Source: Guillardia theta CCMP2712
Taxonomy: Eukaryota > Protista > Cryptophyta
DNA length: 64,000 bases
Direction: 5' to 3'
Assembly: GCF_000315625.1 (NCBI RefSeq)
Contig: NW_005434673.1
Location: 1,069,012 to 1,133,011, forward strand
Below, piece by piece: positions 1-35,270 of the stretch; positions within the stretch are counted from its first letter, which is position 1; the number at the start of each line of letters is the position of its first letter. Both the position numbers and the translations under genes were made by a program. The notes beneath the pieces are model-generated. The model was not told the DNA's origin and searched no databases. It saw only the letters and a list, made by a program, of their open reading frames with translations.

Positions 1-470
<470 letters not shown>

Positions 471-712
471 GAAAGACAGACCAGGGAACTCTGACGGGAG
501 AGGGAAATATCCGAGACGAAGAGAAGGATTGAACTGTCTTTACTTTATACATTGACTCTCTCAAGTACTCTAACTGGAAGACCCCAGCTCCACCCCAGCA
601 GGATCGCAAATAACCCACTCCTCCTCTGTCGTCCTCCGTCTCGAGCTGCTATCGATGTCGGGACTGCTTTCCTCTCTCCCCGTTAATTGAAGGAGGACGA
701 GATAGCGGCTCG

Positions 713-10928: not shown

Positions 10929-13900
10929 ATGCAGTCCTTGCTAGCAAGGAGCATCTTGACTGTGGCCATGGTCGCTCTGTGGTCAGCCATGGCATCAGCG
11001 CAGTGGCGAGGAGGAGGGCTGACCTGGACCAGCAATGGAAATAGCGTGTCCTTCGTGTTTCACGGCTCGTTCGCACGATCGGGGTCGGGCATGGCTGGGT
11101 CTGGACCCAACGGGCAGGTGATGCTGGGGGATGTGGTCCAGCTTGGAGGGCGGGAGCCGTTAGTGTTCGTGCTCGGAGAGGAGGAGGAGGAGATGAGAGG
11201 AGAGGTTAGAGGAATGGACGTGAAGGAGGACACGTTCCAGGTGGTCTGGACGACCATGAAGCAGGTAGATCTCAGCAGTGGCGGTACCATGCCAGCTGCA
11301 GTCCGAGGATGCTGCAGGTTTGCGGGGCTGACATGGCAGGCAGAGACTCCCTTTCAGCTGGCAGTGCAGCTGGACGGAGCGAGGCTGCAAGCTGGGTTCT
11401 CCGGCAGCATTGGGGCGGTAGCGGTGTGGAGAAGTTTCAGTGGGTCGGACCTTGAAGTAAGGATGCGTCCTCCTGGGGTCGGGGTGAGCTCGAGGGCATG
11501 CACTTCCCAGCTGGCGATGAGGTGCCTCGAGGCAGGGAGGTTGGCTGTGTGCACGAAGGGTGGAGAGGTTCCCTTGCTGGAGGACGTGGACTGCTTCCCT
11601 TACTCGCATTGCTTTCCCTCCTTCTGTGCTGGCCAGATGAACGTGAGCAGGAGCGATGCCTTTCTTCGCTTCGCTGGCACAGGCTACGCGGGAGTTGAAG
11701 CAGGAGGAGCGTCATGGACGATGCCGAGCAACATGTCCTGCTACACCACGAAGCTGCAGTCAGGCAGGTGTGAGAGCACAAGGGGATGCTGCTCGACGAA
11801 GAACGGCGACTGCGCCGCTTGCTTCTCGATGCAGGAGGATGGAAGAATCCACGTCCTTGATACGGTAGAGCCAGCGCTCTATGCTCTCTCCTTGGCAGTC
11901 AGTCTGCCGCCTCCTCCTGCATCACGATCTTGTGTGGACTCTCCTCTGCAGTGGACAAGCTCGTCGGGGGTGACTTGCCCTCAGCTCTATGCTCAGGGAC
12001 TTTGCAAGGAGACAGGAAGCGATGGCAGGAGCGCGTATCAGGCTTGTTGCGAGTGCGGAGGAGGGAGCTTTGTCGATGGTTTACCGCCGCCTCCCCTTGT
12101 CGGACTCGACGGGCTCTACGAGTCAAGCGGCTGCAAACTCCCAGCTCAGGTCCAGCTGGTTTGGTGAACTCAGGAAGAGAGTGACGGTTGCGCAGGTGAA
12201 CAAGCCCAACTCGACTTCGACGACCGTCGGGGAGGCGTTTCGATGGAACACTACCGTCTCGATCTCTCCTCGATCCTTCGACGTGGTCATCAGGCTTCAA
12301 GAATTCTCTCGTGCCCTGAACCTCTCTTCTCCTCCCTGCGTCAACGACTCCCTGGACTTCGACGCGAGGATCGAGGGCACTCTCCTGCCGCGGATAGAAG
12401 GGTTTGACATGTCCAACGGCTCCTCCATGTTCGAGCTCCGAGCGTCTCTTCACCGTGTTCTCCTGACCCCGCGCTCAGCTCGTCTTGCCCGCGTCCTCAG
12501 GTCACAGTGTCTGTGCTTGGTTCCTAACGAGAACAGCAGCTTCATCCCTCCCATCGACCAAGAGATCGAGATCCCTTCAAGCTGCCATCCAGAAGACTGC
12601 AAGCTGCTGTCGAGATTTGGAGTCTCGAGCACGCGTGAGATCGCCATGATGTACCTGGGAAGCGGCGGCATTGGTCAGCCCACAAACGTCAGCGACGCAG
12701 CCTCCTCCTCCTCCTCCTCCTCCTCCTCCTCCTCCTCCTCCTTCACCATCACCATTTTTCCTGGACTTGTTGGTTCTTGTGCAAAGGAACAGAAGACCTT
12801 CGCGCCATTGGAGAGGAATGCTTGCGGGTGGGACGGGATCACTGAGAGCGCGTGTGCGAGCATGGGTTGCTGCTGGGACCAGAGCTCGAGAAGCTGCTTC
12901 AGCCGCTCCTACCGCGACGTCTCGTCGTCCGTCTTCCTCCTCCGCTGCAAGAATCAGAGCTTCCTCGCTCCTCTCGCCGCCAACTTGGACATCTCAGGGT
13001 CGTGCGAGTCCTTTGCCGATCAGACAGTGCAAGAGATGAGGGAGCTGGCGCTTGCGAGGGGAGGGGAGGCACCGGATTATGTTAGGAGCGAGTGCGGGGT
13101 CGTGCCTCCTGCCTTGTCAATGCTCGAGTTCCAGGTCGAGGTGCTGGGCCAGGAGGTGCGAAACCTGCACAACAAGGTGACGGGGATGGAAGGGCTCGTT
13201 CCCCTCGACGTCTCGTTCCACCACGGGCTGTCGGGGCAGGCTACAGACGTCATGCAGGTCAACGAAGAGTTCGAGGCGGTGTACCTGGTCCAGGGAACCC
13301 CCAGCTTGCAGGTTCTGTCAGCTGGAGGGTATCCTGGGAACCTCGAGAGCGTGCTGAGCGACGGGAATGCAACCTTCCAATGGCATCACATGCCCAACGT
13401 GATGGAGACCGGGGGGTACACCCAGTGCTTCCAAGGACGGGTACCGGTGACATGTACGGACTACACCGAGGTCTTCTCCTACCTGAGGATGGACTGCTCT
13501 TCTATCAGCCGCTCAGACTGCATTCGTAGCAGCCTCAACTACTCGCTTCCTCCTGACAAGGTCCCGATCGTCCAGGCCTTCCCCTTGAACTCCCTCTTCG
13601 AGGTCTGCTGCCAGTGCGGGGGAGGTATGCGACAAGACCTCTTCACTGACGTCACTTGCCTTCCTGTCGACGTGTTTCCGGATCCTGCTCCCACAATTGC
13701 GATCTCAGGTGCGCCAATCTACATTCCTCCTGCCTTCTGACCCTCCTCCTCCTCCAAGAGCAAACTACCGGCCTGGACGTCCCTTGCAAGAGCTACAATC
13801 TCGGTTATCCCCAGGTCTCAGTGAGCAAATGCAAGCTCCCCGTCCTCCGGGACCCTTGCCGGCCTCCTTTCAACTGTTCATCCGTGCACGTGGACGGGAG

Positions 13901-15894: not shown

Positions 15895-16544
15895 TCACTT
15901 GCAAAGCCTGATCACTGGAGTAGTCGTGCCTAACAGCTAGTTTGTAAAGTGAACAATCAAAAAAAAAAAATGACACCCACGTCCGTATTCCAAATTTCTG
16001 ACTTTGTTTCGAAATTGATAGAGAACATCTCAAAATTTTCAACATTTGGTTGCAAAGGTTTCATTGAGCCAACTACGTACTGCGTTAAATTGGTTGAACA
16101 ACCCACTACTGCATCATATGCATGACCCCTACCCCCATCCTCTTCCCTCAACACATGAAAAAGGAGGGGTCATGTTACTACCCCTCAATGTCGGAAGTGG
16201 GGGTAGTTCCTCTCGTGCCTTGATTAACTTTAGATGACCCTAGCATGGTACCTGTGACCACCCCCCACCTCTCCCTTCACTTCCGCGGTACCAGTGAGCC
16301 CCTACACTCGTCCTGGTTCCGTCTGTACCTGTGGTCGATGACCCCACCCCCTCCATCTGTACCCCTTCCCCACAGGCCCCTCACCAAGGTAGTATCACCC
16401 CACCCCTCTGCCCCCCCCACTCCCCCGACCACGAGAAAACCCCAACAGCCATGAGATTGCGACTCTCAGCACGCGAGGCACGACCCCCTCGTCTCCCACA
16501 AACTACCAACCCCTCCATCAATGACTCTCTTGCGTTAGCCCGCA

Positions 16545-19500
16545 ATGGCGGTAACGCGGAGAGCCTTGCGATGGCAGCAGCACGCGGCGGCTCTGCTGTT
16601 CCTGCTGATCTCTCACGCTCTCCTCCTCGTATCTCATTCCTCGTTCACATTTCAGGCCTTCCAGAGCTATTTCCACTCGAGCTCCACAGCTCCCAAGGCT
16701 CCGGAAAGCTTCTTGTTCGACGATTTTACCAAGGAGAATGTCCATGGGCAGACAGCATATCACCGGCTGTGCACTCTGTTGGGAGAGATGATATCTTTCT
16801 CCTCCTTTTACACTCTTTTTCTTGCTCTGCACGAGGCATTTCATCTGCTTGCTGCTGCTCTCGTCGGCCTCGCCCACCGCTCTCTGCGAATTAGCAACTT
16901 TGTGGACGCCTTGCTGCATCAGCGCGTGACAATCAAGGGGGCTGAGGGATGGCGGTCAACTCTCATACGTCATGCAGGATGGATAGGAAGCATGGCGGTG
17001 ACTTTGGTCGTCTGCGCGAGGGGCTTCAGCGGATCTTGCAAGATAGCAGCTTTCTTTACCTTGATTGACTCGTTGTGCTCCGACCTGCTTGGCATACATC
17101 ACGGGTCAGCAAGCGATGAAGTTTTTCACTGTGGGAACTTTGGAATCATCATATTCGACAAGGAGAAGAGAGGACAAGTGTACTCTTTCCTCAAGACCAT
17201 GGTTCGAATCACCATGATGCGAGGCGCGCAGTCTGGAGGGATTGTCACCTATGTGCCGAAGAAGGATGGGCTCAAGGGAATCAGAAGTCGAGTAGTCAAC
17301 GGCAAGCGAACAGATCTATCTGAGCTCGTCACTTCCAAGGTTCCCCTCCTGTCCACTGCTTGCTGTTGTCCCTCACCGCCTGCGATAGTTGTGGCACGAC
17401 CAGCTCTGGGCAAGCCTCCGCTACGGGCTGCGCGACGACGTTCGAGTGTATGCGGGGCACACGAGGTTTGCGACGTCATCGAAAGCTTCGCTTGATGGGA
17501 CGGTAAGGACGTGGATGTGTTGCTCCTGCTGCTGATCCTCCGATGCAGCACCCACATCAATGGACGCCAGCCGCGGACTACACCTTCTGGGAGGACAAGA
17601 CGTCATGGATGAAGACGACGAAGAATGTTGAGGTAACAACTGATCGACATCTCATGTGATGTGATGATACCGACTTCTCATGTGATGTGGTGAATGCGAT
17701 CGCTTTGACGTCTTGAGATTTTCTCAGGTCTACATCTGTCACAATGGAGACTTCGATGCTCTCGAGCTGGGAGGCTCGACGTACCCTCTGGAGGACATCA
17801 TGGAGTGGTTGGCCCGAGTCAAGTAGGTATGGCTGGTGGCAGGATAGCGCATGACGATGGCCTCTAGCTATCACCCGTGCCCGTCGACCGTTGACAGCGC
17901 GGGAGTCGCGGGAGTCATGGACGTGATGAGGACGCAGGTGGAGTGATGCGGCACCCTGCTGGGGCCGAGGAGCTGCTGACTTGCGAGTCAGGGGCTCTGG
18001 TTTCATTCCCTTCGGTTCGGCTTTCTGTTCGGCCCTGAACGCACATCTCTCAAGTATGAAGTCCCTCCCAAGGTCAGGCGTGTAGGCTGTTTGAATCAAA
18101 TAATCGTTGGCGTGTAGGAAGCTTTCGTCTCTCTGGCGAGAATCGCCGATGATGTCTTTCAGAAGACTGTCCAAACTGCAAAGATGGATCGAAGGATCTT
18201 GAGGTGAGCGATGAGATCTGGTAGTGATTGCCTGTTCATTGCCATGATGTTGGTTGTCTTGCAGGCAGGAGGTCAAGTCAAACCTCGTCGAGGCGTTCGG
18301 GTCAAAGAAGGTCGTCAGGCTGCGATGTTGTCAGTATTGATATCGTAGACAGATTCTGGGACTGAATGCAGAGAGCGGAGATGTGAATCGCCTTGTCAAC
18401 ACAGCTGTAGATGCGTTCTTCGACCAAGATCTGTTCCAGGTGTGTTACGGATGTTGGTGGCTTGATCTCTGCATGGGAGGTGATGATTGTGGTCAGGCCA
18501 CCAGGTTCTTCCTGTCACGGGCCAAGGGATCCTTCGGACTGTGCGTCTCCTGCTCGCTTGATTCCCATGTGAGACACAATAGCCGTGATGACTTTCTGTT
18601 GCTGTCTTGTCTACCGTCAGCGTTGCCATGCTCTACTTAGCTCTACCTCGCTCTCTGCTCAGCTCTATCTCGCTCTCTGCTTAGCTCTATCTCTCTCTGC
18701 TTAGCTCTATCTCGCTCTCTGCTCAGCTCTATCTCTCTCTCTGCTCAGCTCTATCTCTCTCTGCTCAGCTCTATCTCTCTCTGCTCAGCTCTATCTCTCT
18801 CTCTGCTCAGCTCTATCTCTCTCTGCTCAGCTCTATCTCTCTCTGCTCAGCTCTATCTCGCTCTCTGCTTAGCTCTATCTCTCTCTGCTCAGCTCTATCT
18901 CTCTCTGCTCAGCTCTATCTCTCTCTGCTCAGCTCTATCTCTCTCTGCTCAGCTCTATCTCGCTCTCTGCTTAGCTCTATCTCTCTCTGCTTAGCTCTAT
19001 CTCGCTCTCTGCTCAGCTCTATCTCTCTCTGCTCAGCTCTATCTCTCTCTGCTCAGCTCTATCTCTCTCTGCTCAGCTCTATCTCTCTCTGCTCAGCTCT
19101 ATCTCGCTCTCTGCTTAGCTCTATCTCTCTCTGCTTAGCTCTATCTCGCTCTCTGCTTAGCTCTATCTCTCTCTCTGCTCAGCTCTATCTCTCTCTGCTC
19201 AGCTCTATCTCTCTCTGCTCAGCTCTATCTCGCTCTCTGCTCAGCTCTATCTCTCTCTGCTCAGCTCTATCTCGCTTTTGCTTCTTGTCCTCTGTCGCTA
19301 TTCTGACCCGCACAACCAGCGACAAATCGTGTTGGCGGCAAGGGGTCAAACGATTTCTCTAGCCTTCTATCCCAACTCGGGAGTGGTGGTGAGAGAAGTC
19401 AAGCACAACATGTGGGCGTGGGTTGACATCAGCACAGCTTTGGGGATCTGAGCAAGCGGCGGTGAAGGCAGCGCTTGTGGGTGAGTGAACAGAGCAACCT

Positions 19501-22500
19501 CTGTGTCTACCTTTTGCTTTGGCTCTTGGTGAAAATGCACGTTGTGATCTACCTCTACCTCTACCTCTACCTCTACCTCTACCTCTACCTCTACCTCTAC
19601 CTCTACCTCTACCTCTACCTCTACCTTCACCTCTATCTCTACCTCTACCTCTACCTCTACCTCTACCTCTACCTCTACCTGCACTCTACCTCTACCTCTA
19701 CCTCTACCTCTACCTCTACCTCTACCTCTACCTCTACCTCTACCTCTACCTCTACCTCTACCTCTACCTCTACCTCTACCTCTACCTCTACCTCTACCTC
19801 TACCTCTACCTCTACCTCTACCTCTACCTCTACCTTCACCTCTACCTCTACCTCTACCTCTACCTCTACCTCTACCTCTACCTCTACCTCTACCTCTACC
19901 TTCACCTCTACCTCTACCTCTACCTCTACCTCTACCTCTACCTCTACCTCTACCTCTACCTCTACCTTCACCTCTACCTCTACCTCTACCTCTACCTCTC
20001 CTTTTAGCTCCTTGGTCGCATTCAAATTTTGTTATCCTCATTCGTGATCAGGAGACTCGAAGCACTTCGTTGCCATCCATGAGTGCAGCCGTTGCGGATA
20101 TGCAGGTGACCTCAACTCTTGCTCCTGCTACTCTCTGACGCTGCCGTCAGGAGCCGGACACGAAGATGATGGAGCCGTTCGTCTTGACTTGGACGACCTG
20201 GGAGGAGAGGTACGAGAGACCTGCTGCTGCTTTGCTTGATGATCGCTTCCTTCATTCCGCCTGCCTCTGCCTTATTGCTTTACCCTTGTCTCTCTTACTT
20301 GCTTCAACCTCCTCTTCTCTACCCTACTACTCTACTGTAGACTATCTCTTCTTGCCTCCTCCTGCTCGTCTGTCCGTTGACGACAGAGCAGGTCTGCCTG
20401 GTGGACTGGGGGACAGGAAAAGCGACGCGATCTGCCATGACGGAGGAGCTGCCGGTGCATCAGCTCATGGACAACAAGCTGACCATCACGCTGTCTCAGG
20501 AGACTCTTGGCAAGCTGGGAAACTTCAAGAAGCGACTTGTCCGCCTCCACGACAACCCGCTGATCAAGCCGCTTCCTCCCGTGTACCCAGACCCAGTAGG
20601 GAAGGACATCGCAGACATCCCGTACGTGCTCAACAAGATCCAGCAAGACTGGGACGAGGGCAACAGCGTCAACTGCATCACGTCCTGGTGGTTCTCGCGG
20701 GAGCTGATCAAGAGGCTCAAGCGGTACGAGGCCGGCACTCACGATGGCTCCATCGACGTTCTGCTCACGGGCTGCGAAGTGTCTCTGTGGGTCGCGGAGC
20801 AGTTCGCGTCCGACCTCGCGCAGGTGTTTCCGCGCATCTCAGTGCGGGTCATCTCCTCCAACAAGCTGCTGGGCCTGTTTGGTCAGGAGTTTGCGGTCCC
20901 TCAGACGGGCCATCAGTTCAACGAGGAGAGCTGGAAGCTCACCAACACCATCGTCCTCATCGTCAGCCACAGCGGCGGCACCTTCGGCTCCCTCGCTGTC
21001 GCCAACCTCCTCCGCGCCTACACCGAAGTCATCTTTGTCGTCGCGTCCGAGAGCGACACGCAGATAGGCAAGCAGCTGCGGCAGCTCAACCCGGCCGGTA
21101 TGTGGGACTTCAAGTGCTCCACCTTCTCCACCGAGGTCGGGATCCGCCCAGCTGAGCCCTGCACCGTCAGCGTCGTTGCCTCCCACCAGCTGCTGACCCA
21201 GCTGCTCATCTACCTCATGAAGAAGGTGCAGCTTGACGGCATGGAGGAAGCGAGCGGAGGGAAGTACACGGTAGAGGACGTGAAGGTGCTTGAGGAGCTG
21301 CATGCCGAGAACTTCACGGCGATGGAGGACATCGTCGGGTACGACAGGAACGGCATCGCATGCCCGACGTACACGTCCGAGGAGCTCAAGAAGAGAGGAA
21401 GGTACTGGTCGCTCCATGTGCTTGAAGTACCCATGTCGTGGATGCTGTCCTTCTGCTACATCCTTGGGACGCTGGTGAGCAGCTATCCCCTGCNNNNNNN
21501 NNNNNNNNNNNNNNNNNNNNNNNNNNNNNNNNNNNNNNNNNNNNNNNNNNNNNNNNNNNNNNNNNNNNNNNNNNNNNNNNNNNNNNNNNNNNNNNNNNNN
21601 NNNNNNNNNNNNNNCCGCCTGCTGCAGGGTCGTCCCCTCAAGCATCGCATGACCTCTCGCTCGCTCGTCATCGCCGACATCCCCTGGGTGGCTCAGAGCG
21701 TCGAGGCATACGTGAGCAAGCTCTTCGCCTGCGCCTATAGCGCCACCAGCCTCAACGTCTACAGCGCCAACCCCTCGGACCACCTCGTGCACAGGATGAC
21801 CCACCGGGTGGTCAGAGGATGCCTACTGGCTTGCGGCAGACCCGACGGGCGGCTGATCGCCTTGACGTCAGCCGAGGCCTCCGCCTGCCTGTCCGTCAAC
21901 CAGGCCTCCTCCATCCAGAGCATCGGGTCGACATGCGAGAGCCTGACTATCGGGCACAACCCCTACAAGCTCTCGCTGTCTGCCCATGCTGTCTTCCTCA
22001 AGAGCTTCCGCAAGCAGGCGAGCCGCTGCCGCTGCCCCCCTCTCTCTCTCTCTCTTTCTGTCCTCCGGCGTGCATGTCCTCTGCTCTTTGTCGTGCTTCT
22101 CCAGCTTTGCTGGCTTGCTGTTGCTCTTTGTAGTCCTTGAGCAGCAGCAGTATCTCATCTCACAGTTGCATCTGCAGTTCATCTGCGAACACGCGCTGCA
22201 GCGAGAGTTCGGCAAGGATTTTCTCAACAAGTCTAGCAGGTGAGTCGCGAGGCTTCTGGGCTTGATGTGACACACGAGTAGCGGGGTCATCCTCGGAGCA
22301 TACTCCAACATCAAGAAGAGGAACATGAGGAGGGTAAGTCCAGCAGCTGTCCAGCAGCCGGCAAGCTGAGAAACGATTTTTTCTTCTTTTGTTTTACAGA
22401 GGAAGAAGTCAGTGATAGATGACACGGAAACAACGAAGATGGACGGCACTGTCACATCCTACGTCTCCTTCAATCAAGGTGTTGCCTGCTGCCTCCTGTA

Positions 22501-23526
22501 CACTCTCGTCCTGCTGCTTCTGCTGCTCCTCTTGGATGCTACGTCTTGCGGCTCCTCCCCTCCCCTCGTTTGTTGTCTCCGTCTCCCCTTCCATCCCTCC
22601 ATCCATCCTCCTCTCCGTCGTCTTGTGGCGGGGCTGACGTTCAAGCAACAGGAGGCAACGACTGCAGCATCTCCATTCGATCCCCCGAGGAGACAGGGCA
22701 TGGCCTGATGGACGTGAGCGAGCACACTCATGAGCTGGTGGAGCTCATGAACGAGGGGAAGTTGCACCGGAAGAAGTCGAAGAAAGAGATGAAGTCGCTG
22801 CTGGGAGAGCTGCACAACAAGAGCATGCGCGTGCAGATGGAGGAGAACTACTACGGGGAGCTGCTGGAGAAGGAGATGGAGGGGACGCCTCTCATGGAGC
22901 TCGTCAACTCGCAGACCGTGGCGATGCGGCTGTACGAGTCGAGGATCGCGTCCATGCAGCGCTGCGTCGCGTTCTACGTGATGTTCCATGCTCTCGGCAA
23001 GCGAGTGCAAGACTTCTGGCCGTCGGTGTCGCTGGGGTACCTGCGCTACGACATGAGCAGGACTCACTCCATCATGCGCATCGCCACCACCGCCTCCCCG
23101 GTGAGCGGCGCGGAGGTCAGAGACATCACTATCGAGCTCGAGCAGAAGCGACGCATCGCGCACTCCCGCACCCTCCTGTCGAGGTACTTGGAGAAGAGGA
23201 AGCTGCGGCTGCAGAGGGAGAAGGAGAGGGCGAGGATGGAGGAGGAGACGAGGAAGAAGTTGCTCTCCCGCTTCGACCCGGAGCAGATCTCCATGCTGGG
23301 AAAGCTCATGGGCACGCAGCTCAACACGGCAGACCCGAGCATGGTAGTGCTGCAAGCCATCGTTGATGGTAAGAAGCCGGGAGATCTTAAGGATGCAGCG
23401 CCGGAGGAGGTGGCGAGCTCGCTTCAGGAACCAGCATCCCCTGACATCCAGCCTGTGGAGGTAGAGGAGGAAGACGAGCGACGGGCTGCCGCAGAGCTGC
23501 CCCTGGCGGAGTCAAGCGAAGTATGA
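16545..23526 (+). CDS. Fusion protein: M50B-like HExxH membrane module + class II (Ntn) glutamine amidotransferase + SIS domain + TM helices (GlmS-like), copy 1, multi-exon
   Basis: LALHEAFHLLAAALVG...IRHAGWIG...CSDLLG; then CGNFGII...MRGAQSGG...GHTRFATSS...HPHQW...HNGDF...DSAGVA (GATase-2 motifs); then LLTGCEVSL...VLIVSHSGGTF...EPCTVSVVASH (SIS). Contains a 121-N gap. Confidence 0.8.
18638..19275. repeat. Intronic 20-22-bp minisatellite (GCTYAGCTCTATCTC(GC)TCTCT)n, about 30 units
   Basis: Directly visible; only about 3 units at the mirror position 30975-31040. Confidence 0.97.
19548..19997. repeat. Intronic (CTACCT)n hexanucleotide array
   Basis: Directly visible; shorter mirror copy (AGGTAG)n at 30510-30703. 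Confidence 0.98.
21494..21614. other. Run of 121 N (gap or masked bases)
   Basis: Flanks map to the mirror copy, where the intervening sequence 28897-29017 is also 121 bp. Confidence 0.97.
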
Positions 23527-23847
23527 GGGAGACGAGAGAGGAGCGAGATTAACAGGAAAGACGTTAGAGAGAATGTGACAGCGAGCACGATCTTGTCATG
23601 TCTCACAGTATGATGTCTGTAGCTTCCTTGTAGTCTATTCGTATTACGGCTTCATTGTCTTGATTGCTTGCGGTTGATCCAGCAGAGTCTGACCATCGCT
23701 GTCTTAACATGCGTCACTCGCTGCTGTCTCCTACACGCTGATTCCACGACAGGACAAGATCTCCCTTGCCGGGCACAGAGGACATGAGACGAGATTGATT
23801 GAAGACGGCATGCAAGCGCTACAGTGACATGCGAGCTGATAACTCTC

Positions 23848-25425
23848 TCATCCAAGAAGCAGCAGCTTGCAGATCGAGTCCAAGATCTGCAGCACGACAC
23901 CCTTGAGATCCTCGTACCTCCCACAGCAATCCTTCACCTTGTCGCTCAGCCGGATCATCCCGTCGCACACCACCACCTCCTCCTCCAGCTCGTGCACTCC
24001 CGCCTTGTCGAGCACGCACCCCCTCTCCTCTCCGCTGCCTGCAACAGACTAAGGCTTCTCTCCTCACCACGCCTCCTCGTCTCACCTCTGCTGCTGCTGC
24101 TGCTCCGCTGTCTCCTCGCCTCCTCGCTCAGCCTGTCGATCATGCCCTCCCTTCGCAGCAGATGCATCAGCGCCACCCGCTCCTGCGCTCCTCTCCCTCC
24201 CATCTCCTCCTCCTTCTCGCTCCTCGACGTGCATCTCCAGACATAAGTGACGGCATCCCATGTCGGAAACCTCCCGCGTCCTGTCGCGACTTTCCTGTTA
24301 TGGTACGAGGGGAACATGGACCTGTGGAGGCGACTCAGCAGGAGAGGAGGACAGCAACATGGGCAGCCGCACCGGTCGAACACAACCCGCCGCACGAATC
24401 CAAGTCGAAGCTCCTCCTGCTCCGTCTTGTGCCCTGCTGACTCGGCGAGTTCCGGGAGGTTCCAGTGGCAGAAGGGAGGCTTGGTCTTGTGGGATACGTG
24501 GACCTGCTGGATGCATCAGCACCCGAGCAGGAGCCTCCTCGACTTCACCTGACCCCCTTGCCGGGTGATCTTGATGACGGACATGAAGAATCTAAAGCGC
24601 AAGGAGCAAGTGAGAGGCTGTCAGGCACAGACGGCAGCTTCTACTTGCTCATCAGATCCTTGTTCTGTTCGATCTCCTCCAGCTGTGCGTCTTTCCCTTC
24701 CTTTCCCCCATCCACACAGGGAAAGTTCCACACAACAAGATCGAAACGCAAGTCACTGATCATGTTGCTGTCTTGTTGCCGGCTCTTGCGGCAGCTGCGG
24801 GAGATGGAGGAGGAGAGGTCGGTAGCATCCACCTCATGCAGCACGACAGCCCCGCTGGCCTCAAGCTCTCGGATCGTCTTTCCTGTCCTCACGTCAGCAT
24901 CTCGTCACGCGCTCAAGCAGGTCGCACCAATCTCTTCCTTGCCGTACGCTTCCTCCAAGCTTCTCCGCGACAAGTGTGTCGTAGCCACGAAGCAGCCAGC
25001 ATGCTCGCTGGCTCGAAGGCGACGCGCCATGCTCATGGAGAAGGTCAGGTCACCGTCGCCTACTGTGAGGATGGAGGACTTGGGGAGGAGAGCAGCTAGG
25101 TCGCTGGCAGCAGGAGGCGAGCTTGCTGCTGCTCGCATGCGGATGCATTCTTCGGGCCGACGGTTCGGCCTGAACCGGCTGCCCTGCTCGTGCTTGATGA
25201 AAGGCTGCACGACGAGCTTGTACGCGCAAGGAATGCAGCCTGACAAGGTGCAGGCCATGACCTCGGGGTAGCAGAAGAGCCTGTCGTCCTCGCAGCGTCT
25301 GGGTATGATGATCAGCCTCGCATGCTGACACACGATTGCGTTACCTGCATGTGAACCTGTAGGATCTGATCTCCTCCTCCTCCTCCTCCTCCACGCGCGC
25401 ATGCTTCTGCTTCTTCCCTTTCCAT
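23848..25425 (-). CDS. 25S rRNA (uridine-N3)-methyltransferase BMT5-like / DUF2431 protein
   Basis: SILTVGDGDLTFSMSMAR, FVATT, LEASGAVVLHEVDATDL, FDLVVWNFPCV, IEQNKDLM, VSHKTKPPFCHWNL, FPSYHNRK are DUF2431 motifs. Start position uncertain. Confidence 0.85.
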
Positions 25426-25940
25426 TGCTCGCCCTCGTGCTCTCCCTTCCTCTTCCCCTTCATGGTCCCTCTCCCTTTCTCCTTCACCTCTGCCTTCCCC
25501 TTGCAGATCTGTCCATTGCCCCCCTCCACCCCGATCCCTTGCTTCCCCAACAGGATCCGCCCCTTCCCCTCTTTCCGAGGCTCTTTTTTCAATCAATCCA
25601 CCTCCCCTCCCTCCTCCCTCCCCCCGCTGCTTCACGGGGGATCCCGCGACGTCCTCCGCTGGGTGCTGCTGCATCCTAGCCAGGATCGAAGGCAGCAAGG
25701 TGAACGCGTCGTCATGCGACATGGTTGCGAGTCATAGAGCAAGAGGAGGCGTCAGGTTCCCACCTTGAAATCCAGCCACCACGAGTTTCATAGCGGGGCA
25801 TGTTTCATCCTCTCCCTTCACCCTCCTCCTCCGACTTGTCTCCCGCCTTCACCCACTCGACTCCTCGGATCATCCGCTTCCAGTCTCCTCTCCTCCTCTC
25901 ATCTCTTTGACTCCATCCGCTCCCCTGCTCTCTCCTCAAC

Positions 25941-26661
25941 GAGGAGGAGATCAGATCCTACATGTTTGGGCTGCTGCTACCCCGAGGTCATGGCCTGCAC
26001 CTTGTCAGGCTGCATTCCTTGCGCGTACAAGCTCGTCGTGCAGCCTTTCATCAAGCACGAGCAGCCGGTTCAGGCCGAACCGTCGGCCCGAAGAATGCAT
26101 CCGCATGCGAGCAGCATCAAGCTCGCCTCCTGCAGCAAGCTCGCCGCTGCCAGCGACCTAGCTGCTCTCCTCCCCAAGTCCTCCATCCTCACAGTAGGCG
26201 ACGGTGACCTGACCTTCTCCATCAACAGGACGCGGGAGGTTTCCGACATGGGATGCCGTCACTTATGTCTGGAGATGCACGTCGAGGAGCGAGAAGGAGG
26301 AGGAGATGGGAGGGAGAGGAGCGCAGGAGCGGGTGGCGCTGATGCATCTGCTACGAAGGGAGGGCATGATCGACAGGCTGAGCGAGGAGGCGAGGAGACA
26401 GCGGAGCAGCAGCAGCAGCAGAGGTGAGACGAGGAGGCGTGGTGAGGAGAGAAGTCTTAGTCTGTTGCAGGCAGCGGAGAGGAGAGGGGGTGCGTGCTCG
26501 ACAAGGCGGGAGTGCACGAGCTGGAGGAGGAGGTGGTGGTGTGCGACGGGATGATCCGGCTGAGCGACAAGGTGAAGGATTGCTGTGGGAGGTACGAGGA
26601 TCTCAAGGGTGTCGTGCTGCAGATCTTGGACTCGATCTGCAAGCTGCTGCTTCTTGGATGA
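25941..26661 (+). pseudogene. Inverted, internally deleted and frameshifted copy of the BMT5-like gene
   Basis: Matches 25035-25379 (reverse complement) up to GDGDLTFS at 26222, then a 2-nt 'CA' filler, then resumes at the equivalent of 24284. About 750 bp of the catalytic core is missing and the frame shifts. Confidence 0.85.
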
Positions 26662-26982
26662 GAGAGTTATCAGCTCGCATGTCACTGTAGCGCTTGCATG
26701 CCGTCTTCAATCAATCTCGTCTCATGTCCTCTGTGCCCGGCAAGGGAGATCTTGTCCTGTCGTGGAATCAGCGTGTAGGAGACAGCAGCGAGTGACGCAT
26801 GTTAAGACAGCGATGGTCAGACTCTGCTGGATCAACCGCAAGCAATCAAGACAATGAAGCCGTAATACGAATAGACTACAAGGAAGCTACAGACATCATA
26901 CTGTGAGACATGACAAGATCGTGCTCGCTGTCACATTCTCTCTAACGTCTTTCCTGTTAATCTCGCTCCTCTCTCGTCTCCC

Positions 26983-29900
26983 TCATACTTCGCTTGACTC
27001 CGCCAGGGGCAGCTCTGCGGCAGCCCGTCGCTCGTCTTCCTCCTCTACCTCCACAGGCTGGATGTCAGGGGATGCTGGTTCCTGAAGCGAGCTCGCCACC
27101 TCCTCCGGCGCTGCATCCTTAAGATCTCCCGGCTTCTTACCATCAACGATGGCTTGCAGCACTACCATGCTCGGGTCTGCCGTGTTGAGCTGCGTGCCCA
27201 TGAGCTTTCCCAGCATGGAGATCTGCTCCGGGTCGAAGTGGGAGAGCAACTTCTTCCTCGTCTCCTCCTCCATCCTCGCTCTCTCCTTCTCCCTCTGCAG
27301 CCGCAGCTTCCTCTTCTCCAAGTACCTCGACAGGAGGGTGCGGGAGTGCGCGATGCGTCGCTTCTGCTCGAGCTCTATGGTGATGTCTCTGACCTCCGCG
27401 CCGCTCACCGGGGAGGCGGTGGTGGCGATGCGCATGATGGAGTGAGTCCTGCTCATGTCGTAGCGCAGGTACCCCAGCGACACCGACGGCCAGAAGTCTT
27501 GCACTCGCTTGCCGAGAGTATGGAACATCACGTAGAACGCGACGCAGCGCTGCATGGACGCGATCCTCGACTCGTACAGCCGCATCGCCACGGTCTGCGA
27601 GTTGACGAGCTCCATGAGAGGCGTCCCCTCCATCTCCTTCTCCAGCAGCTCCCCGTAGTAGTTCTCCTCCATCAGCACGCGCATGCTCTTGTTGTGCAGC
27701 TCTCCCAGCAGCGACTTCATCTCTTTCTTCGACTTCTTCCGGTGCAACTTCCCCTCGTTCATGAGCTCCACCAGCTCATGAGTGTGCTCGCTCACGTCCA
27801 TCAGGCCATGCCCTGTCTCCTCGGGGGATCGAATGGAGATGCTGCAGTCGTTGCCTCCTGTTGCTTGTCCGTCAGCCCCGCCACAAGACGACGGAGAGGA
27901 GGATGGATGGAGGGATGGAAGGGGAGACGGAGACAACAAACGAGGGGAGGGGAGGAGCCGCAAGACGTAGCATCCAAGAGGAGCAGCAGAAGCAGCAGGA
28001 CGAGAGTGTACAGGAGGCAGCAGGCAACACCTTGATTGAGGGAGACGTGGGATGTGACAGTGCCGTCCATCTTCGTTGTTTCCGTGTCATCTATCACTGA
28101 CTTCTTCCTCTGTAAAACAAAAGAAGAAAAAATCGTTTCTCAGCTTGCCGGCTGCTGGACAGCTGCTGGACTTACCCTCCTCATGTTCCTCTTCTTGATG
28201 TTGGAGTATGCTCCGAGGATGACCCCGCTACTCGTGTGTCACATCAAGCCCAGAAGCCTCGCGACTCACCTGCTAGACTTGTTGAGAAAATCCTTGCCGA
28301 ACTCTCGCTGCAGCGCGTGTTCGCAGATGAACTGCAGATGCAACTGTGAGATGAGATACTGCTGCTGCTCAAGGACTACAAAGAGCAACAGCAAGCCAGC
28401 AAAGCTGGAGAAGCACGACAAAGAGCAGAGGACATGCACGCCGGAGGACAGAAAGAGAGAGAGAGAGAGAGAGGGGCAGCGGCAGCGGCTCGCCTGCTTG
28501 CGGAAGCTCTTGAGGAAGACAGCATGGGCAGACAGCGAGAGCTTGTAGGGGTTGTGCCCGATGGTCAGGCTCTCGCATGTCGACCCGATGCTCTGGATGG
28601 AGGAGGCCTGGTTGACGGACAGGCAGGCGGAGGCCTCGGCTGACGTCAAGGCGATCAGCCGCCCGTCGGGTCTGCCGCAAGCCAGTAGGCATCCTCTGAC
28701 CACCCGGTGGGTCATCCTGTGCACGAGGTGGTCCGAGGGGTTGGCGCTGTAGACGTTGAGGCTGGTGGCGCTATAGGCGCAGGCGAAGAGCTTGCTCACG
28801 TATGCCTCGACGCTCTGAGCCACCCAGGGGATGTCGGCGATGACGAGCGAGCGAGAGGTCATGCGATGCTTGAGGGGACGACCCTGCAGCAGGCGGAGGA
28901 GGAGGATGGTCCACTGCGGGAGGAAGATGTAGATGAGAGAGTCGAAGACGTTGATGATGTAAGTGGCCCACCACTGCCTTGACCGATCCAGACCGCATGC
29001 TCCCGCTATTCCAATAAGCAGGGGATAGCTGCTCACCAGCGTCCCAAGGATGTAGCAGAAGGACAGCATCCACGACATGGGTACTTCAAGCACATGGAGC
29101 GACCAGTACCTTCCTCTCTTCTTGAGCTCCTCGGACGTGTACGTCGGGCATGCGATGCCGTTCCTGTCGTACCCGACGATGTCCTCCATCGCCGTGAAGT
29201 TCTCGGCATGCAGCTCCTCAAGCACCTTCACGTCCTCTACCGTGTACTTCCCTCCGCTCGCTTCCTCCATGCCGTCAAGCTGCACCTTCTTCATGAGGTA
29301 GATGAGCAGCTGGGTCAGCAGCTGGTGGGAGGCAACGACGCTGACGGTGCAGGGCTCAGCTGGGCGGATCCCGACCTCGGTGGAGAAGGTGGAGCACTTG
29401 AAGTCCCACATACCGGCCGGGTTGAGCTGCCGCAGCTGCTTGCCTATCTGCGTGTCGCTCTCGGACGCGACGACAAAGATGACTTCGGTGTAGGCGCGGA
29501 GGAGGTTGGCGACAGCGAGGGAGCCGAAGGTGCCGCCGCTGTGGCTGACGATGAGGACGATGGTGTTGGTGAGCTTCCAGCTCTCCTCGTTGAACTGATG
29601 GCCCGTCTGAGGGACCGCAAACTCCTGACCAAACAGGCCCAGCAGCTTGTTGGAGGAGATGACCCGCACTGAGATGCGCGGAAACACCTGCGCGAGGTCG
29701 GACGCGAACTGCTCCGCGACCCACAGAGACACTTCGCAGCCCGTGAGCAGAACGTCGATGGAGCCATCGTGAGTGCCGGCCTCGTACCGCTTGAGCCTCT
29801 TGATCAGCTCCCGCGAGAACCACCAGGACGTGACGCAGTTGACGCTGTTGCCCTCGTCCCAGTCTTGCTGGATCTTGTTGAGCACGTATGGGATGTCTGC

Positions 29901-32900
29901 GATGTCCTTCCCTACTGGGTCTGGGTACACGGGCGGAAGCGGCTTGATCAGCGGGTTGTCGTGGAGGCGCACAAGTCGCTTCTTGAAGATTCCCAGCTTG
30001 CCAAGAGTCTCCTGAGACAGCGTGATGGTCAGCTTGTTGTCCATGAGCTGATGCACCGGCAACTCCTCCGTCATGGCAGATCGCGTCGCTTTTCCTGTCC
30101 CCCAGTCCACCAGGCAGACCTGCTCTGTCGTCAACGGACAGACGAGCAGGAGGAGGCAAGAAGAGATAGTCTACAGTAGAGTAGTAGGGTAGAGAAGAGG
30201 AGGTTGAAGCAAGTAAGAGAGACAAGGGTAAAGCAATAAGGCAGAGGCAGGCGGAATGAAGGAAGCGATCATCAAGCAAAGCAGCAGCAGGTCTCCCGTA
30301 CCTCGCCTCCCAGGTCGTCCAAGTCAAGACGAACGGCTCCATCATCTTCGTGTCCGGCTCCTGGGCCGGCAGCGTCAGAGAGGAGCAGGAGCAAGAGTTG
30401 AGGTTACCTTCGTATCCGCAACGGCTGCACTCATGGACGGCAACGAAGTGCTTCGAGTCTCCTGATCACGAATGAGGATAACAAAATTTCAATGCGACGA
30501 AGGAACTGAAGAGGTAGAGGTAGAGGTGAAGGTAGAGGTAGAGGTAGAGGTAGAGGTAGAGGTAGAGGTAGAGGTAGAGGTAGAGATAGAGGTAGAGGTA
30601 GAGGTAGAGATAGAGGTAGAGGTAGAGATAGAGGTGAAGGTAGAGGTAGAGGTAGAGGTAGAGGTAGAGGTAGAGGTAGAGGTAGAGATAGAGGTAGAGG
30701 TAGATCACAACGTGCATTTTCACCAAGAGCCAAAGCAAAAGGTAGACACAGAGGTTGCTCTGTTCACTCACCCACAAGCGCTGCCTTCACCGCCGCTTGC
30801 TCAGACCCCCAAAGCTGTGCTGATGTCAACCCACGCCCACATGTTGTGCTTGACTTCTCTCACCACCACTCCCGAGTTGGGATAGAAGGCTAGAGAAATC
30901 GTTTGACCCCTTGCCGCCAACACGATTTGTCGCTGGTTGTGCGGGTCAGAATAGCGACAGAGGACAAGAAGCAAAAGCGAGGTAGAGCTGAGCAGAGAGC
31001 GAGGTAGAGCTGAGCAGAGAGCGAGGTAGAGCTAAGTAGAGCATGGCAACGCTGACGGTAGACAAGACAGCAACAGAAAGTCATCACGGCTATTGTGTCT
31101 CACATGGGAATCAAGCGAGCAGGAGACGCACAGTCCGAAGGATCCCTTGGCCCGTGACAGGAAGAACCTGGTGGCCTGACCACAATCATCACCTCCCATG
31201 CAGAGATCACGCCACCAACATCCGTAACACACCTGGAACAGATCTTGGTCGAAGAACGCATCTACAGCTGTGTTGACAAGGCGATTCACATCTCCGCTCT
31301 CTGCATTCAGTCCCAGAATCTGTCTACGATATCAATACTGACAACATCGCAGCCTGACGACCTTCTTTGACCCGAACGCCTCGACGAGGTTTGACTTGAC
31401 CTCCTGCCTGCAAGACAACCAACATCATGGCAATGAACAGGCAATCACTACCAGATCTCATCGCTCACCTCAAGATCCTTCGATCCATCTTTGCAGTTTG
31501 GACAGTCTTCTGAAAGACATCATCGGCGATTCTCGCCAGAGAGACGAAAGCTTCCTACACGCCAACGATTATTTGATTCAAACAGCCTACACGCCTGACC
31601 TTGGGAGGGACTTCATACTTGAGAGATGTGCGTTCAGGGCCGAACAGAAAGCCGAACCGAAGGGAATGAAACCAGAGCCCCTGACTCGCGAGTCAGCAGC
31701 TCCTCGGCCCCAGCAGGGTGCCGCATCACTCCACCTGCGTCCTCATCACGTCCATGACTCCCGCGACTCCCGCGCTGTCAACGGTCGACGGGCACGGGTG
31801 ATAGCTAGAGGCCATCGTCATGCGCTATCCTGCCACCAGCCATACCTACTTGACTCGGGCCAACCACTCCATGATGTCCTCCAGAGGGTACGTCGAGCCT
31901 CCCAGCTCGAGAGCATCGAAGTCTCCATTGTGACAGATGTAGACCTGAGAAAATCTCAAGACGTCAAAGCGATCGCATTCACCACATCACATGAGACGTC
32001 GGTATCATCACATCACATGAGATGTCGATCAGTTGTTACCTCAACATTCTTCGTCGTCTTCATCCATGACGTCTTGTCCTCCCAGAAGGTGTAGTCCGCG
32101 GCTGGCGTCCATTGATGTGGGTGCTGCATCGGAGGATCAGCAGCAGGAGCAACACATCCACGTCCTTACCGTTCCATCAAGAGAAGCTTTCGATGACGTC
32201 GCAAACCTCGTGTGCCCCGCATACACTCGAACGTCGTCGCGGAGCCCGTAGCGGAGGCTTGCCCAGAGCTGGTCGTGCCACAACTATCGCAGGCGGTGAG
32301 GGACAACAGCAAGCAGTGGACAGGAGGGGAACCTTGGAAGTGACGAGCTCAGATAGATCTGTTCGCTTGCCGTTGACTACTCGACTTCTGATTCCCTTGA
32401 GCCCATCCTTCTTCGGCACATAGGTGACAATCCCTCCAGACTGCGCGCCTCGCATCATGGTGATTCGAACCATGGTCTTGAGGAAAGAGTACACTTGTCC
32501 TCTCTTCTCCTTGTCGAATATGATGATTCCAAAGTTCCCACAGTGAAAAACTTCATCGCTTGCTGACCCGTGATGTATGCCAAGCAGGTCGGAGCACAAC
32601 GAGTCAATCAAGGTAAAGAAAGCTGCTATCTTGCAAGATCCGCTGAAGCCCCTCGCGCAGACGACCAAAGTCACCGCCATGCTTCCTATCCATCCTGCAT
32701 GACGTATGAGAGTTGACCGCCATCCCTCAGCCCCCTTGATTGTCACGCGCTGATGCAGCAAGGCGTCCACAAAGTTGCTAATTCGCAGAGAGCGGTGGGC
32801 AAGGCCGACGAGAGCAGCAGCAAGCAGATGAAATGCCTCGTGCAGAGCAAGAAAAAGAGTGTAAAAGGAGGAGAAAGATATCATCTCTCCCAACAGAGTG

Positions 32901-33127
32901 CACAGTCGGTGATATGCTGTCTGCCCATGGACATTCTCCTTGGTAAAATCGTCGAACAAGAAGCTTTCCGGAGCCTTGGGAGCTGTGGAGCTCGAGTGGA
33001 AATAGCTCTGGAAGGCCTGAAATGTGAACGAGGAATGAGATACGAGGAGGAGAGCGTGAGAGATCAGCAGGAGCAGCAGAGCCGCCGCGTGCTGCTGCCA
33101 TCGCAAGGCTCTCCGCGTTACCGCCAT
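26983..33127 (-). CDS. M50B-like + GATase-2 + SIS fusion protein, copy 2 (apparently intact)
   Basis: Same motifs as copy 1. The uninterrupted ORF 28266..30134 includes the TM segment hidden by Ns in copy 1 (LIGIAGACGLDRSRQWWATYIINVFDSLIYIFLPQWTILLL). Confidence 0.8.
30510..30703. repeat. (AGGTAG)n intronic array, mirror of 19548-19997
   Basis: Directly visible. Confidence 0.95.
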
Positions 33128-33581
33128 TGCCTGGGGAAAAGATTCTTCAAGTGGGAGGGCCCGATAAGGCCATAAAGGTGCCATATACTTACTACGGTAG
33201 GTACCGGTAGGTATTGTAGGGCGGTAGAGTCGCAATCTCATGGCTGTTGGAGTTCGGGAGGGGTTGTGTGAAGGGGGAGAGACGGTAGGGTCATCAAAAG
33301 TTAACCAGTGCACGAGAAGAGGTAGAGCAGGTACGTATCGTATACTACCGAAGTTACCGTACTGTAGATACGTACTAGAAGTTAAGTCAAAAATCAGTCA
33401 TGGCCCACTGCCATGTCACCGCTCCGGGGCCCGCCGGCAAAGAACTTCGAAGCAACTACGGGACTAAGTCACTGATACTCCTGCAGGATGACGCGTTGCG
33501 CTTTCTGTGGCAGCTGAAACGGCAGCGTTGAGATGTCTCAGGTGATGCAACTTGTAAACACATCCGGTCCAGGATCTTCCG

Positions 33582-34350
33582 TCAGCTCAAGGCTTCCCTG
33601 TGCTTCCCTGTCAAGTAAGCCAGCACGCCAAGTTGTGAGTTTAGCAGAAGACGATGTAGTTTTTTAGCACCATTGACTGTTCGTTGCACATCCTCTCGAG
33701 GAAGGGCAGGGAAGAGAATGCTCGAGAAGATCCTCTTGTGCTGTCTACGCTTTCTAAGAATCGCTAGCCATGATGACGTTGAGTTGCCCCTAAGTTGCTG
33801 CGAATCTTCCTTGAGTTCAGCAGAGATGAGCTCTAGGTCCTGCAGGAGCAAGGTGTGTTTGACTTCGTCATCTTTCTAGTACCTCCTCCCGCTTCTGAGA
33901 AGAACCCTGGTTGGGAGGAGGATGACCCATTTGGCCCTTTCGAAGGAGGTGTCTCTGAACATCAAAGGATCGAAGGAAGAGTGATTAGTGAAGCTTTAGC
34001 GAAACATTTCACGCTTGAGCTCGATGCTCCAGATCGTTACGACTATGGACCGAAGGAAAGAAAAGAAGGAGAGCGACTTAAGTGTTGGTTCAGAGATGAG
34101 GAGAAGCAACCCTTGGAGCTCTCATGCTCAAGAAGCGAGGAAGCCAAAAGATGAAAGGATGGTGAAGCAGCAGGAGAAAAAGTGTAATGAGGTTGGAATT
34201 GTACTGGATGAAGTCATGAGGATGTTTCCTTCAGTGCCTGCTGCGGAGGAGGGGGAGCGGAGGCTGGAGATGAAGGAGCTGATGAAGCTCCATCGTCTGT
34301 CTCCTCGTCCTCCAAACCTTCTTGATATCTGATCCTTGGCGATCTCGAGA
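33582..34350 (-). other. Possible coding remnant of unknown function downstream of the inverted Kelch copy
   Basis: Protein-like ORF LLLQDLELISAELKEDSQQLRG...HREALS*; competing plus-strand ORFs exist, so the strand is uncertain. Confidence 0.3.
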
Positions 34351-34352
34351 GG

Positions 34353-35270
34353 CACATCAACAGCCTTGGCGAAGATCTCCCACTCTGCTCTCGCAGCCCT
34401 GGAGAAGAACTCGGGTGAGCACGTGAACGTGCAGGGTGCGGGAGCGGAGGGTCTGGGAGAGGAGGATCGAGAAGGAGTAGACGGAAAGGAGGAGGGAGAG
34501 GGAAGGAGCGAGAAGAGGGAAGGAGAAGAGAGAGGGAGGAGAGGGAGGGAGAAGAGGGAGAAGAGAGAGATGGCCAAGGCAAGGGAGGGAGACGAGAGGA
34601 AGGAAGGGGATGAGGAACAAGTCCGTGTGGGGGGAGCTACTTGCCCGTCGTGTCTGCTCGCGTTCGCTGCCGAGAAGTTCCCGCTGAGGATGTCAAGCCG
34701 TGACCGATGATCGCTCAGGATCTTGGTCTCCCCGGACTTCTGCTCGTTCTCCAGGTCAAACTGCAGCGCGTCCAGACGGACACAGGCAAAGTTGGTGAGC
34801 GCCTTAGGCAGTCGGAGAGCGGCTGGGGACGTCTGCTCGCCTGCCCTTGGGGAGGAGGTGACTTCAGTCCACTCCTCCTGCTGGGGATCGTAGCGCTCGA
34901 TGGAGGAGTCGACTCCATCCCTGGTCCGACCGCCGAGGGCGAGGATGCAACCATGATCCGGCAGCGCCATGAGCTTGTGGTTGGCGCGAGCTCGCGACAT
35001 CCTCCTCGCAGAGCTCCAGCGGGGGGGGAAGGTGGAGGGGTCGAAGGCCTCGACTGTGTCCTCCATGTCGGGCGTGTAGGAGTAGCCGCCTGAATGGCAA
35101 TGAGCAAGACCATCTCCTTGGACGTTCGTTCATGCTGCCTGGCCCTGAAGACGAGTCCGCCCATGCGCCAGGTTGAGATCGGAGAGAGAGGAGGAGAGGA
35201 GAGGGCAAGCGGAGAGGGGAAGACAAGGATGCGGGGATGTAGGGGGATGGGGGGGAGGAAAGGAGGGCCT
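34353..35270 (-). pseudogene. Inverted, internally deleted partial copy of the Kelch gene
   Basis: 34353-35094 is the near-identical reverse complement of 36559-37300. 35095-35270 is a diverged copy of about 35440-35592. About 966 bp (35593-36558) is absent, and the upstream ATG frame (MVLLIAIQAATP) is out of phase with the Kelch frame. Confidence 0.85.

Follow-up and report, generated by a model that had tools for sequence, protein, structure and literature searches.

In a 64,000-nt stretch of Guillardia theta CCMP2712 DNA (contig NW_005434673.1, hereafter the window), a gene on the forward strand (16788..23526) was found that would encode a membrane protein of 1369 amino acids (aa), in which a 114-aa module resembling the core of site-2 proteases (S2Ps; M50) stands directly in front of the putative catalytic Cys of an enzyme modeled as a complete GlmS/GFAT-like amidotransferase. 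The reading that we favor, held at somewhat less than an even chance and resting in part on structural models, is that the protein is a proenzyme which its own mini-S2P would cut at the X|Cys bond. We infer that this cleavage occurs, that the module catalyzes it and does so in cis, and that a sugar phosphate serves as the acceptor of the enzyme. An S2P core fused right before an N-terminal nucleophile (Ntn) appears to be undescribed, both building blocks being known. The first-pass annotation of this DNA had put the gene forward as an undescribed system, and the literature searched indeed contained nothing on an S2P–amidotransferase fusion or a membrane GlmS-like family; the system is not specific to the window and belongs to a widespread algal and protist family.

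That family was collected by an exhaustive HMMER search with the large exon as query, which returned 1188 proteins, 370 of them at E ≤ 1e-30. The full-length homologues are mostly 1200–1600 aa long, and some reach 2300–2900 aa. They came from Diacronema lutheri, Pelagophyceae sp. CCMP2097 (KAJ1454221.1), Euglena gracilis, Chrysotila carterae, Entomoneis sp., Klebsormidium nitens (GAQ85582.1) and MMETSP transcripts, and the shared architecture was found in haptophytes, diatoms, pelagophytes, Euglena and Klebsormidium. In the databases, the Chrysotila proteins are named "Glutamine amidotransferase type-2 domain-containing protein" (UniProt) and the Klebsormidium one "putative type II glutamine amidotransferase", further names being no more specific than "hypothetical". 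Judged by sequence, this is a large, uncharacterized family spread over algae and protists and not peculiar to the G. theta window.

The N-terminal S2P-like module

The motifs HEAFH, RHAGW, DSLCSD and CGNFG, which the first-pass annotation had assigned to one reading frame, were all confirmed in the single open reading frame (ORF) 16545–17495 and within exon 1, where the Asp codon (17082–17084) stands 16 residues ahead of the Cys. The claim of a single frame is right from HEAFH to CGNFG, but the downstream motifs lie in other frames and are split over 17 exons. The elements of this region, including the transmembrane (TM) helices of the module, are as follows.

16788..17129 (+): mini site-2-protease-like (M50) module of 114 aa, with TM1, a short strand, TM2 and TM3
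16830..16844 (+): HEAFH in TM1, invariant, with two putative zinc-binding His and the putative catalytic Glu; aligned to HExxH of RseP/SpoIVFB
16923..16931 (+): short beta-strand R46-V47-T48 at the S2P edge-strand position, by DSSP on the AlphaFold2 model
16968..16991 (+): RHAGWIGS, start of TM2 (RHAGW at 16968–16982); G64 near-invariant, S68 invariant
17067..17084 (+): DSLCSD, end of TM3; the invariant D99 (17082–17084) is the putative third metal ligand
17085..17129 (+): predicted linker of 15 residues, ending in V-F-H (P3–P1), the presumed cleavage segment
17130..17144 (+): CGNFG, with Cys115 equivalent to the nucleophile of class-II glutamine amidotransferases (GATases) by structural alignment; C, G and N invariant

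An alignment of 25 modules showed H15, E16, H19, S68, D99, C115, G116, N117 and G119 to be invariant. When a hidden Markov model of the module was scanned over all homologues, the H-E-H...D...C-G-N pattern was unchanged in the approximately 35 clusters that carry a complete module (mutually <50% identical), including the long forms, whose module is found some 850–1100 residues into the chain. The co-conservation of HExxH and Asp with the Cys, proposed as a check by the first-pass annotation itself, was thereby borne out. This invariance throughout the family rules out an HExxH arising by chance. The invariant Glu of HExxH is not a ligand of the metal, and the co-conservation of H, E, H, D, C, G and N, this Glu included, was counted in favor of a protease acting in cis.

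Comparisons with known proteases pointed in the same direction, as the claim of an M50B-like module ahead of the Cys had anticipated. Sub-threshold Pfam matches were obtained for 14 of the 25 modules (Peptidase_M50 in 8, M50B in 6), together with one to DUF3267. A profile search of the PDB with the module matched solely RseP and SpoIVFB, with HExxH placed on HExxH and aGWxxS on AGPxxN, and HMMER aligned RHAGWIGS with the AGPxxN of RseP. An AlphaFold2 model of the window protein's own first 119 residues reached a predicted local distance difference test (pLDDT) value of 92, with HEAFH at residues 15–19 of a helix spanning 2–25. Using VIA-align against 48,161 PDB chains, the first three ranks for this model were MjS2P (3b4r_B; Z 7.4, 104 residues aligned), SpoIVFB (8vjl_A; Z 7.2) and KkRseP (7w6z_A; Z 6.7), covering 101–104 of the 119 residues, and AaRseP (9j83_A; Z 6.0) ranked sixth. 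In the ESM Atlas, M50 clusters came first by shape (TM-scores of 0.66–0.69), and the nearest entries by sequence features were mini-M50 proteins of 108–135 aa from phages and Bacillota (0.92). Because the hits agree across Pfam, PDB profile, structure and Atlas, with no single score being decisive, the assignment of the extension to an M50/S2P-like three-helix core is supported, with HExxH predicted in helix 1, GxxxS in helix 2 and the Asp at the end of helix 3.

In RseP, zinc is coordinated by H22 and H26 of TM1 together with D402 of TM3-C, and a bound substrate adds a strand to the edge strand of a beta-sheet between TM1 and TM2 (PMC9401612). D99 is located in the third helix as D402 is, a likeness by helix position. 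Similar to S2Ps (RseP, SpoIVFB, MjS2P; MEROPS M50) and to mini M50/M50B/DUF3267 proteins, the module combines HExxH in helix 1, a small-residue motif in helix 2 and an Asp in helix 3. It shares with S2Ps a short strand after helix 1 at the position of the substrate-binding edge strand, and its modeled topology would be the same, with the active site towards the soluble-domain side. Unlike S2Ps, however, the module is just 114 aa long and lacks a PDZ or CBS domain and a fourth gating helix; it is also fused upstream of an enzyme, and what it is proposed to cut is a part of its own chain that lies outside a TM helix.

The GlmS-like enzyme part

Structural tests of the enzyme part were performed on a homologue and not on the window protein, namely the Diacronema lutheri protein P0005, which is 43% identical to it. 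Residues 1–1200 of P0005 were modeled with AlphaFold2 from a 64-sequence alignment, giving a pLDDT of 90.1 and a predicted TM-score (pTM) of 0.85, with all TM helices packed in one confident body. Foldseek matched this model to full-length GlmS and human GFAT-1 at E ~2e-16. By VIA-align, 602/650 residues were aligned with GFAT-1 (Z 30.2) and 590/608 residues with E. coli GlmS (Z 29.7, 3.3 Å), the model residues 120..1179 corresponding to GlmS 1..608. The aligned range opens precisely with the Cys of CGNFG and closes at the conserved C-terminal tail, so that the Cys which had been proposed as a class-II GATase nucleophile superposes on GlmS Cys1. As modeled, the soluble part is homologous in structure to GlmS/GFAT as a whole, with a class-II Ntn glutaminase domain followed by a double-SIS isomerase domain, and every TM segment is inserted into the complete GlmS fold. 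Unlike in the soluble, cytosolic GlmS, TM helices are present N-terminally, between the two SIS halves and ahead of the C-tail. The corresponding elements in the window are listed below.

17130..19480 (+): glutaminase (Ntn, class II) domain, exons 1–11, by invariant motif columns and fold matches
17220–17240, 17455–17475, 17549–17563, 17740–17751 and 17890–17898 (+): glutaminase motifs RGAQSGG, GHTRFAT, HPHQW, HNGD and VDS, respectively
20392..22017 (+): exon 13, double-SIS isomerase-like domain with the SHSGGT phosphate loop (20965–20982) and a TM insertion (~21433–21640)
22966..23118 (+): C-terminal TM helix (VAFYVMFHALG), then the conserved tail THSIMRIATTASPVSGAEV, counterpart of the GlmS C-terminal tail

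Every glutamine-site motif of class-II amidotransferases (RG, HTRxAT, HNG, D-S) was found in the window protein, and R31, G32, G89, H90, R92, F93, A94, T95, H139, N140, G141, D142, D175 and S176 were invariant in the family alignment. The P0005 model matched the Ntn folds of 1xff_A (Z 26.6, 238/238 aligned) and PurF (1ecb, Z 23.1). Its isomerase domain gave structural matches with Z 28–30, the inserted TM helices being residues 819–902. In the phosphate loop SHSGGT, the S, S, G and T of SxSGxT are fully or almost fully conserved.

At the level of sequence, the relationship is distant. Pfam searches with single window exons gave zero GATase, SIS or M50 matches at E ≤ 0.1–10, phmmer with the large exon found no match in the PDB, and the profile of the isomerase region reached SIS proteins in the PDB at E ~0.8 only. 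The curated Pfam models GATase_2/6/7 left the window exons unmatched, and GATase_6 was detected in 2/22 homologues (best E 0.0017). In the HMMER check suggested by the first-pass annotation, M50/M50B appeared weakly, GATase stayed below the curated level and no SIS domain was recovered on the window exons. With hhalign against E. coli GlmS, only two motifs were aligned, GHTRFAT..HPH with GlmS residues 70–90 and SHSGGT with SQSGET, and the isomerase residues E488, H504 and K603 were not among them.

Compared with GlmS/GFAT, the family thus has the whole two-domain fold, the Cys at Cys1, the R-G/HTRxAT/HNG/D-S motifs, the SxSGxT loop and the C-terminal tail. It differs in a sequence identity of ~10–14% and in staying below the Pfam models for GATase and SIS, as well as in its N-terminal S2P-like module, TM insertions and variable EF-hand/ACT tails. 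A further difference is the invariant cluster DHxVHRxTHRxxRG...GRPDGR in the isomerase part, with the equivalents of E488/H504/K603 unaligned. The phosphate loop suggests a sugar phosphate as acceptor, but because of this distinct cluster the acceptor is uncertain.

C-terminal EF-hands are common among the homologues. ACT domains were observed in P0027 (residues 1706–2021), and in P0128 (2885 aa, NCBI) a Glucosamine_iso domain of NagB/6PGL type follows the core (residues 2332–2450, E 8e-7); either may be a gene-model fusion. The Glucosamine_iso domain hints at hexosamine-phosphate chemistry.

Linker, Met-Cys forms and maturation

Across the family, a linker of 12–34 residues separates the Asp from the Cys and ends in a conserved G-V-F-x: P2 is F/Y/L/H in 36/36 sequences, V/T prevails at P3 and G is frequent at P4. 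In the module-only model, V-F-H (112–114) forms a strand by DSSP, for which the only other strand, 46–48, is the sole possible partner. Such a V-F-H/R46–T48 pairing would agree with the strand-addition substrate binding of RseP (PMC9401612). In the full-length P0005 model, the linker is the sole segment with a pLDDT under 50.

Class-II amidotransferases rely on a free alpha-amino group at Cys1. In the window protein, the Cys is residue 115 (or 196, from the alternative start described below) of the precursor, and no Met directly precedes CGNFG; a Met brought to that place by transcript start or splicing was what the first-pass annotation had named as speaking against its proposal. Five divergent lineages lack the module, and these begin exactly with Met-Cys-Gly-Asn. 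In the genomic contigs of two Met-Cys members, the 0.8–1.1 kb upstream is interrupted by in-frame stops and does not encode an HExxH; together with the divergence of the five clusters, this makes mis-called exons unlikely as their origin. In a tree of the conserved core, the Met-Cys forms are scattered, and the starred branches require at least 3 changes. As repeated module loss leaves exactly Met-Cys, the enzyme appears to need its Cys free at the N-terminus. The Met-Cys forms also retain the remaining TM helices, so the module is not simply a membrane anchor. The earlier description of the module as a membrane tether therefore fails, further TM helices being present within and after the isomerase domain.

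Because class-II amidotransferases need the free alpha-amino group of Cys1, the polytopic membrane protein would most likely be made as an inactive precursor, with the Cys buried behind the module, which would serve as a built-in maturation protease. In this scheme, the 15-residue linker would fold back, and its G-V-F-x end would pair as a beta-strand with the one that lies between helices 1 and 2. A single cut of the X|Cys bond at the zinc site would free the nucleophile, after which the module may remain within the membrane bundle. The modeled topology supports cleavage in cis, as HExxH and the Asp lie near the helix ends, on the side from which linker and soluble enzyme extend. The fuller proposal of a covalently attached, single-turnover maturation protease of a membrane GlmS-like amidotransferase, possibly controlled by Ca2+ or metabolites via the EF-hand/ACT tails, is put forward more tentatively still.

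Several points weigh against this proenzyme scheme. The window module scored 15.4 bits in Pfam against a cut-off of 26 (E 0.016; best member E 1.7e-4), a Z of ~7 is middling for a helical bundle, Foldseek of the module model against the PDB gave nothing below E 1, and of the S2P motif NxxPxxxLDG only the Asp is retained (module consensus TAxEAxxSDL). Docking of the V-F-H strand was not seen in the full-length P0005 model, the module is internal in the homologues of 2300–2900 aa, and an RNA run of the same species label yielded a single matching read in the ~6% of the run examined. Moreover, no protease dedicated to the task takes part in the maturation of Ntn hydrolases in general or of propeptide class-II amidotransferases such as B. 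subtilis PurF and glutamate synthase, so that an S2P is not required; characterized S2Ps cut TM helices of other proteins and are not known to cleave themselves in cis.

The internal position of the module deserves a closer description. P0087, P0103, P0107, P0127 and P0134 (2250–2640 aa) form a well-supported clade, in which the module and the Cys lie ~850–1230 residues into the protein and the long region ahead of the module is without a Pfam match. For these forms, the precursor idea would need an internal cut.

The internal Cys of B. subtilis PurF (11-residue propeptide) and of the glutamate synthase large subunit is exposed by removal of an N-terminal propeptide, and proteasome beta subunits, penicillin acylase and glycosylasparaginase are zymogens cut right before the nucleophile, whose fragments can stay together. 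The propeptides of PurF and glutamate synthase are short, soluble and without protease motifs, whereas the pro-region of the window protein is a conserved, three-TM, metalloprotease-like domain; autoprocessing Ntn hydrolases self-activate via the nucleophile, with no separate fused protease domain. The precedents nevertheless offer a rather unlikely alternative, namely that the precursor is matured by Ntn autoproteolysis, the Cys attacking the preceding bond, and that the module is an S2P for other proteins with the GlmS-like part as a metabolite sensor. Apart from the self-processing known in these enzymes, it draws on S2Ps often carrying regulatory domains (CBS, PDZ), an Atlas row showing CBS/M50 fusions, and on the EF-hand and ACT tails, which suggest a regulated, signaling-like protein. 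The internal module of the long homologues also speaks for it, and a conserved catalytic Glu would be compatible with any proteolytic role. On the other side, the module always stands right ahead of the Cys, at the distance of a 12–34-residue linker with conserved P4–P2; the Met-Cys forms keep all else, which implies that the enzyme works alone and that the module appears to serve it; and the minimal core has no gate or substrate-selecting domain.

Another explanation, considered improbable, is that the protein is not processed at all, the module being a structural, metal-binding part of the helix bundle and the glutaminase being either inactive or a glutamine sensor with an internal Cys. The P0005 model, in which all TM helices form one confident body at pTM 0.85, and the degenerate context of the S2P NPDG motif would fit such a protein. 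This explanation is opposed by the invariance of the HExxH Glu, which is not a ligand, by the glutaminase catalytic motifs, all of which are invariant, and by the independent module losses, which always give Met-Cys as expected only if a free Cys matters.

If cleavage by the own mini-S2P is true, the protein would be the first site-2 protease acting in cis as a zymogen activator, providing a new way to switch on amide-nitrogen transfer at the membrane of algae and protists and linking intramembrane metalloproteolysis with Ntn-nucleophile activation, two mechanisms so far unconnected. It would define a large, conserved and unstudied enzyme family in haptophytes, diatoms, pelagophytes, euglenids and streptophyte algae, and the ~114-aa S2P core with a covalently attached substrate would be a handy model for substrate binding and cutting by S2Ps. 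It would also point to a membrane-located, possibly Ca2+-regulated, glutamine-dependent step in algal sugar-phosphate or amino-sugar metabolism that annotation has missed.

Gene model, inverted duplication and surroundings

The exon model of the gene was built with homologues as tblastn guide and comprises 17 exons with zero internal stops.

16788–17339, 17389–17502, 17549–17632, 17728–17822, 17868–17937 and 17992–18072 (+): exons 1–6
18118–18203, 18349–18439, 18497–18568, 19320–19388, 19438–19480 and 20151–20209 (+): exons 7–12
20392–22017, 22178–22239, 22282–22333, 22400–22478 and 22652–23526 (+): exons 13–17
16545..16787 (+): possible upstream extension of exon 1, 81 codons from the alternative ATG 16545, with a hydrophobic, signal-like stretch, in the same ORF
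21494..21614: run of N, 121 nt, inside exon 13, the sole N run of the window
26983..32884 (−): gene copy 2 in the inverted arm, with the same 17 exon lengths and an intact 1369-aa product

The introns are 42–751 nt long and of GT-AG type, with one GC-AG as the sole exception. This probable GC-AG intron (22018–22177; donor CAG|GCGAGC, acceptor CTGCAG) was placed from the homologue consensus LPxxRPxFLCE, and exons 14–17 are the least secure part of the model. The short GT-AG introns, and long ones rich in microsatellites, identify the region by sequence as eukaryotic, and a bacterial single-frame gene is ruled out by the 17-exon structure. The window protein is collinear with the homologue P0002 from residue 14 to 1023 (51% identity over 1071 columns). 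The long introns 18569–19319 and 19481–20150 consist almost wholly of tandem repeats (CTCT/GCTCAG-type units, then a CTCTAC/CTACCT hexamer array), which accounts for artefactual long ORFs on both strands at 19367–20047.

As the homologues begin immediately before the HExxH helix (P0003 and P0006 start at the position of M82), ATG 16788 is more likely to be the start codon than ATG 16545, and the extension ahead of the Cys would be 114 aa rather than 195 aa, shorter than the length of about 195 aa first given. Opposite the N run, copy 2 has 121 real bases (28897–29017), which are in frame and encode hydrophobic TM-helix residues aligning with the TM insertion of the homologues. One blastp high-scoring segment pair with P0002 also spans the run, and the lengths agree. 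From the copy 2 bases and the homologue alignment, continuity of the reading frame across the run is supported.

The two arms of the inverted duplication, 16542–24284 and 26225–33130, are 99.3–99.4% identical and carry the whole gene twice, tail to tail. As had been claimed earlier, the motifs are kept in both copies: both are intact at 1369 aa, and their 21 nt and 7 aa differences leave the N-terminal module and the glutaminase motifs unaffected. Synonymous and replacement differences stand at ~14:7, and the intron microsatellite tracts (~18640–20050 vs. 30500–31040) are unequal in length between the arms. In an independent DNA run, the word depth was 118 in the arm vs. 54 outside (~2×), and one contig departs from the window sequence exactly at 16542. 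An assembly or hairpin artefact is ruled out as the source of the palindrome by the 0.5–0.7% divergence, the 14:7 ratio, the microsatellite lengths and the ~2× depth. The 14:7 ratio, the differing microsatellite lengths and the doubled depth argue for two real, selected gene copies, either paralogues or alleles.

That the fusion itself is an artefact of the gene model, with the HExxH and GATase regions on separate transcripts or starts, or of the palindrome, with one copy non-functional, is very improbable. Its footholds are the two possible start codons (16545 or 16788) and the single RNA read. Against it, HExxH and CGNFG lie within one uninterrupted exon with no Met directly before the Cys in the window, and both motifs occur in a single ORF in transcript-derived homologues (MMETSP, Euglena gracilis, Entomoneis, Chrysotila). 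Both copies are also intact, with 14 synonymous and 7 replacement differences, and the word depth differs between arm and outside as given above.

In the spacer between the arms (24285–26224), a shorter inverted pair was spotted by eye (~25040–25290 vs. 25960–26230), suggesting a nested or stepwise palindrome. A second inverted repeat, 742 nt long and of 99% identity, lies 1.2 kb from the first (34353–35094 / 36559–37300), with Kelch-motif ORFs on both of its arms at 34128–35066 (−) and 36359–37312 (+). Elsewhere in the window, Trefoil, EGF/CUB and Filamin-repeat domains occur in ORFs at 11989–13740, 49451–50548 and 52355–54502; such modules are typical of eukaryotic extracellular or cytoskeletal proteins, and nothing evident ties them to the GlmS-like gene.

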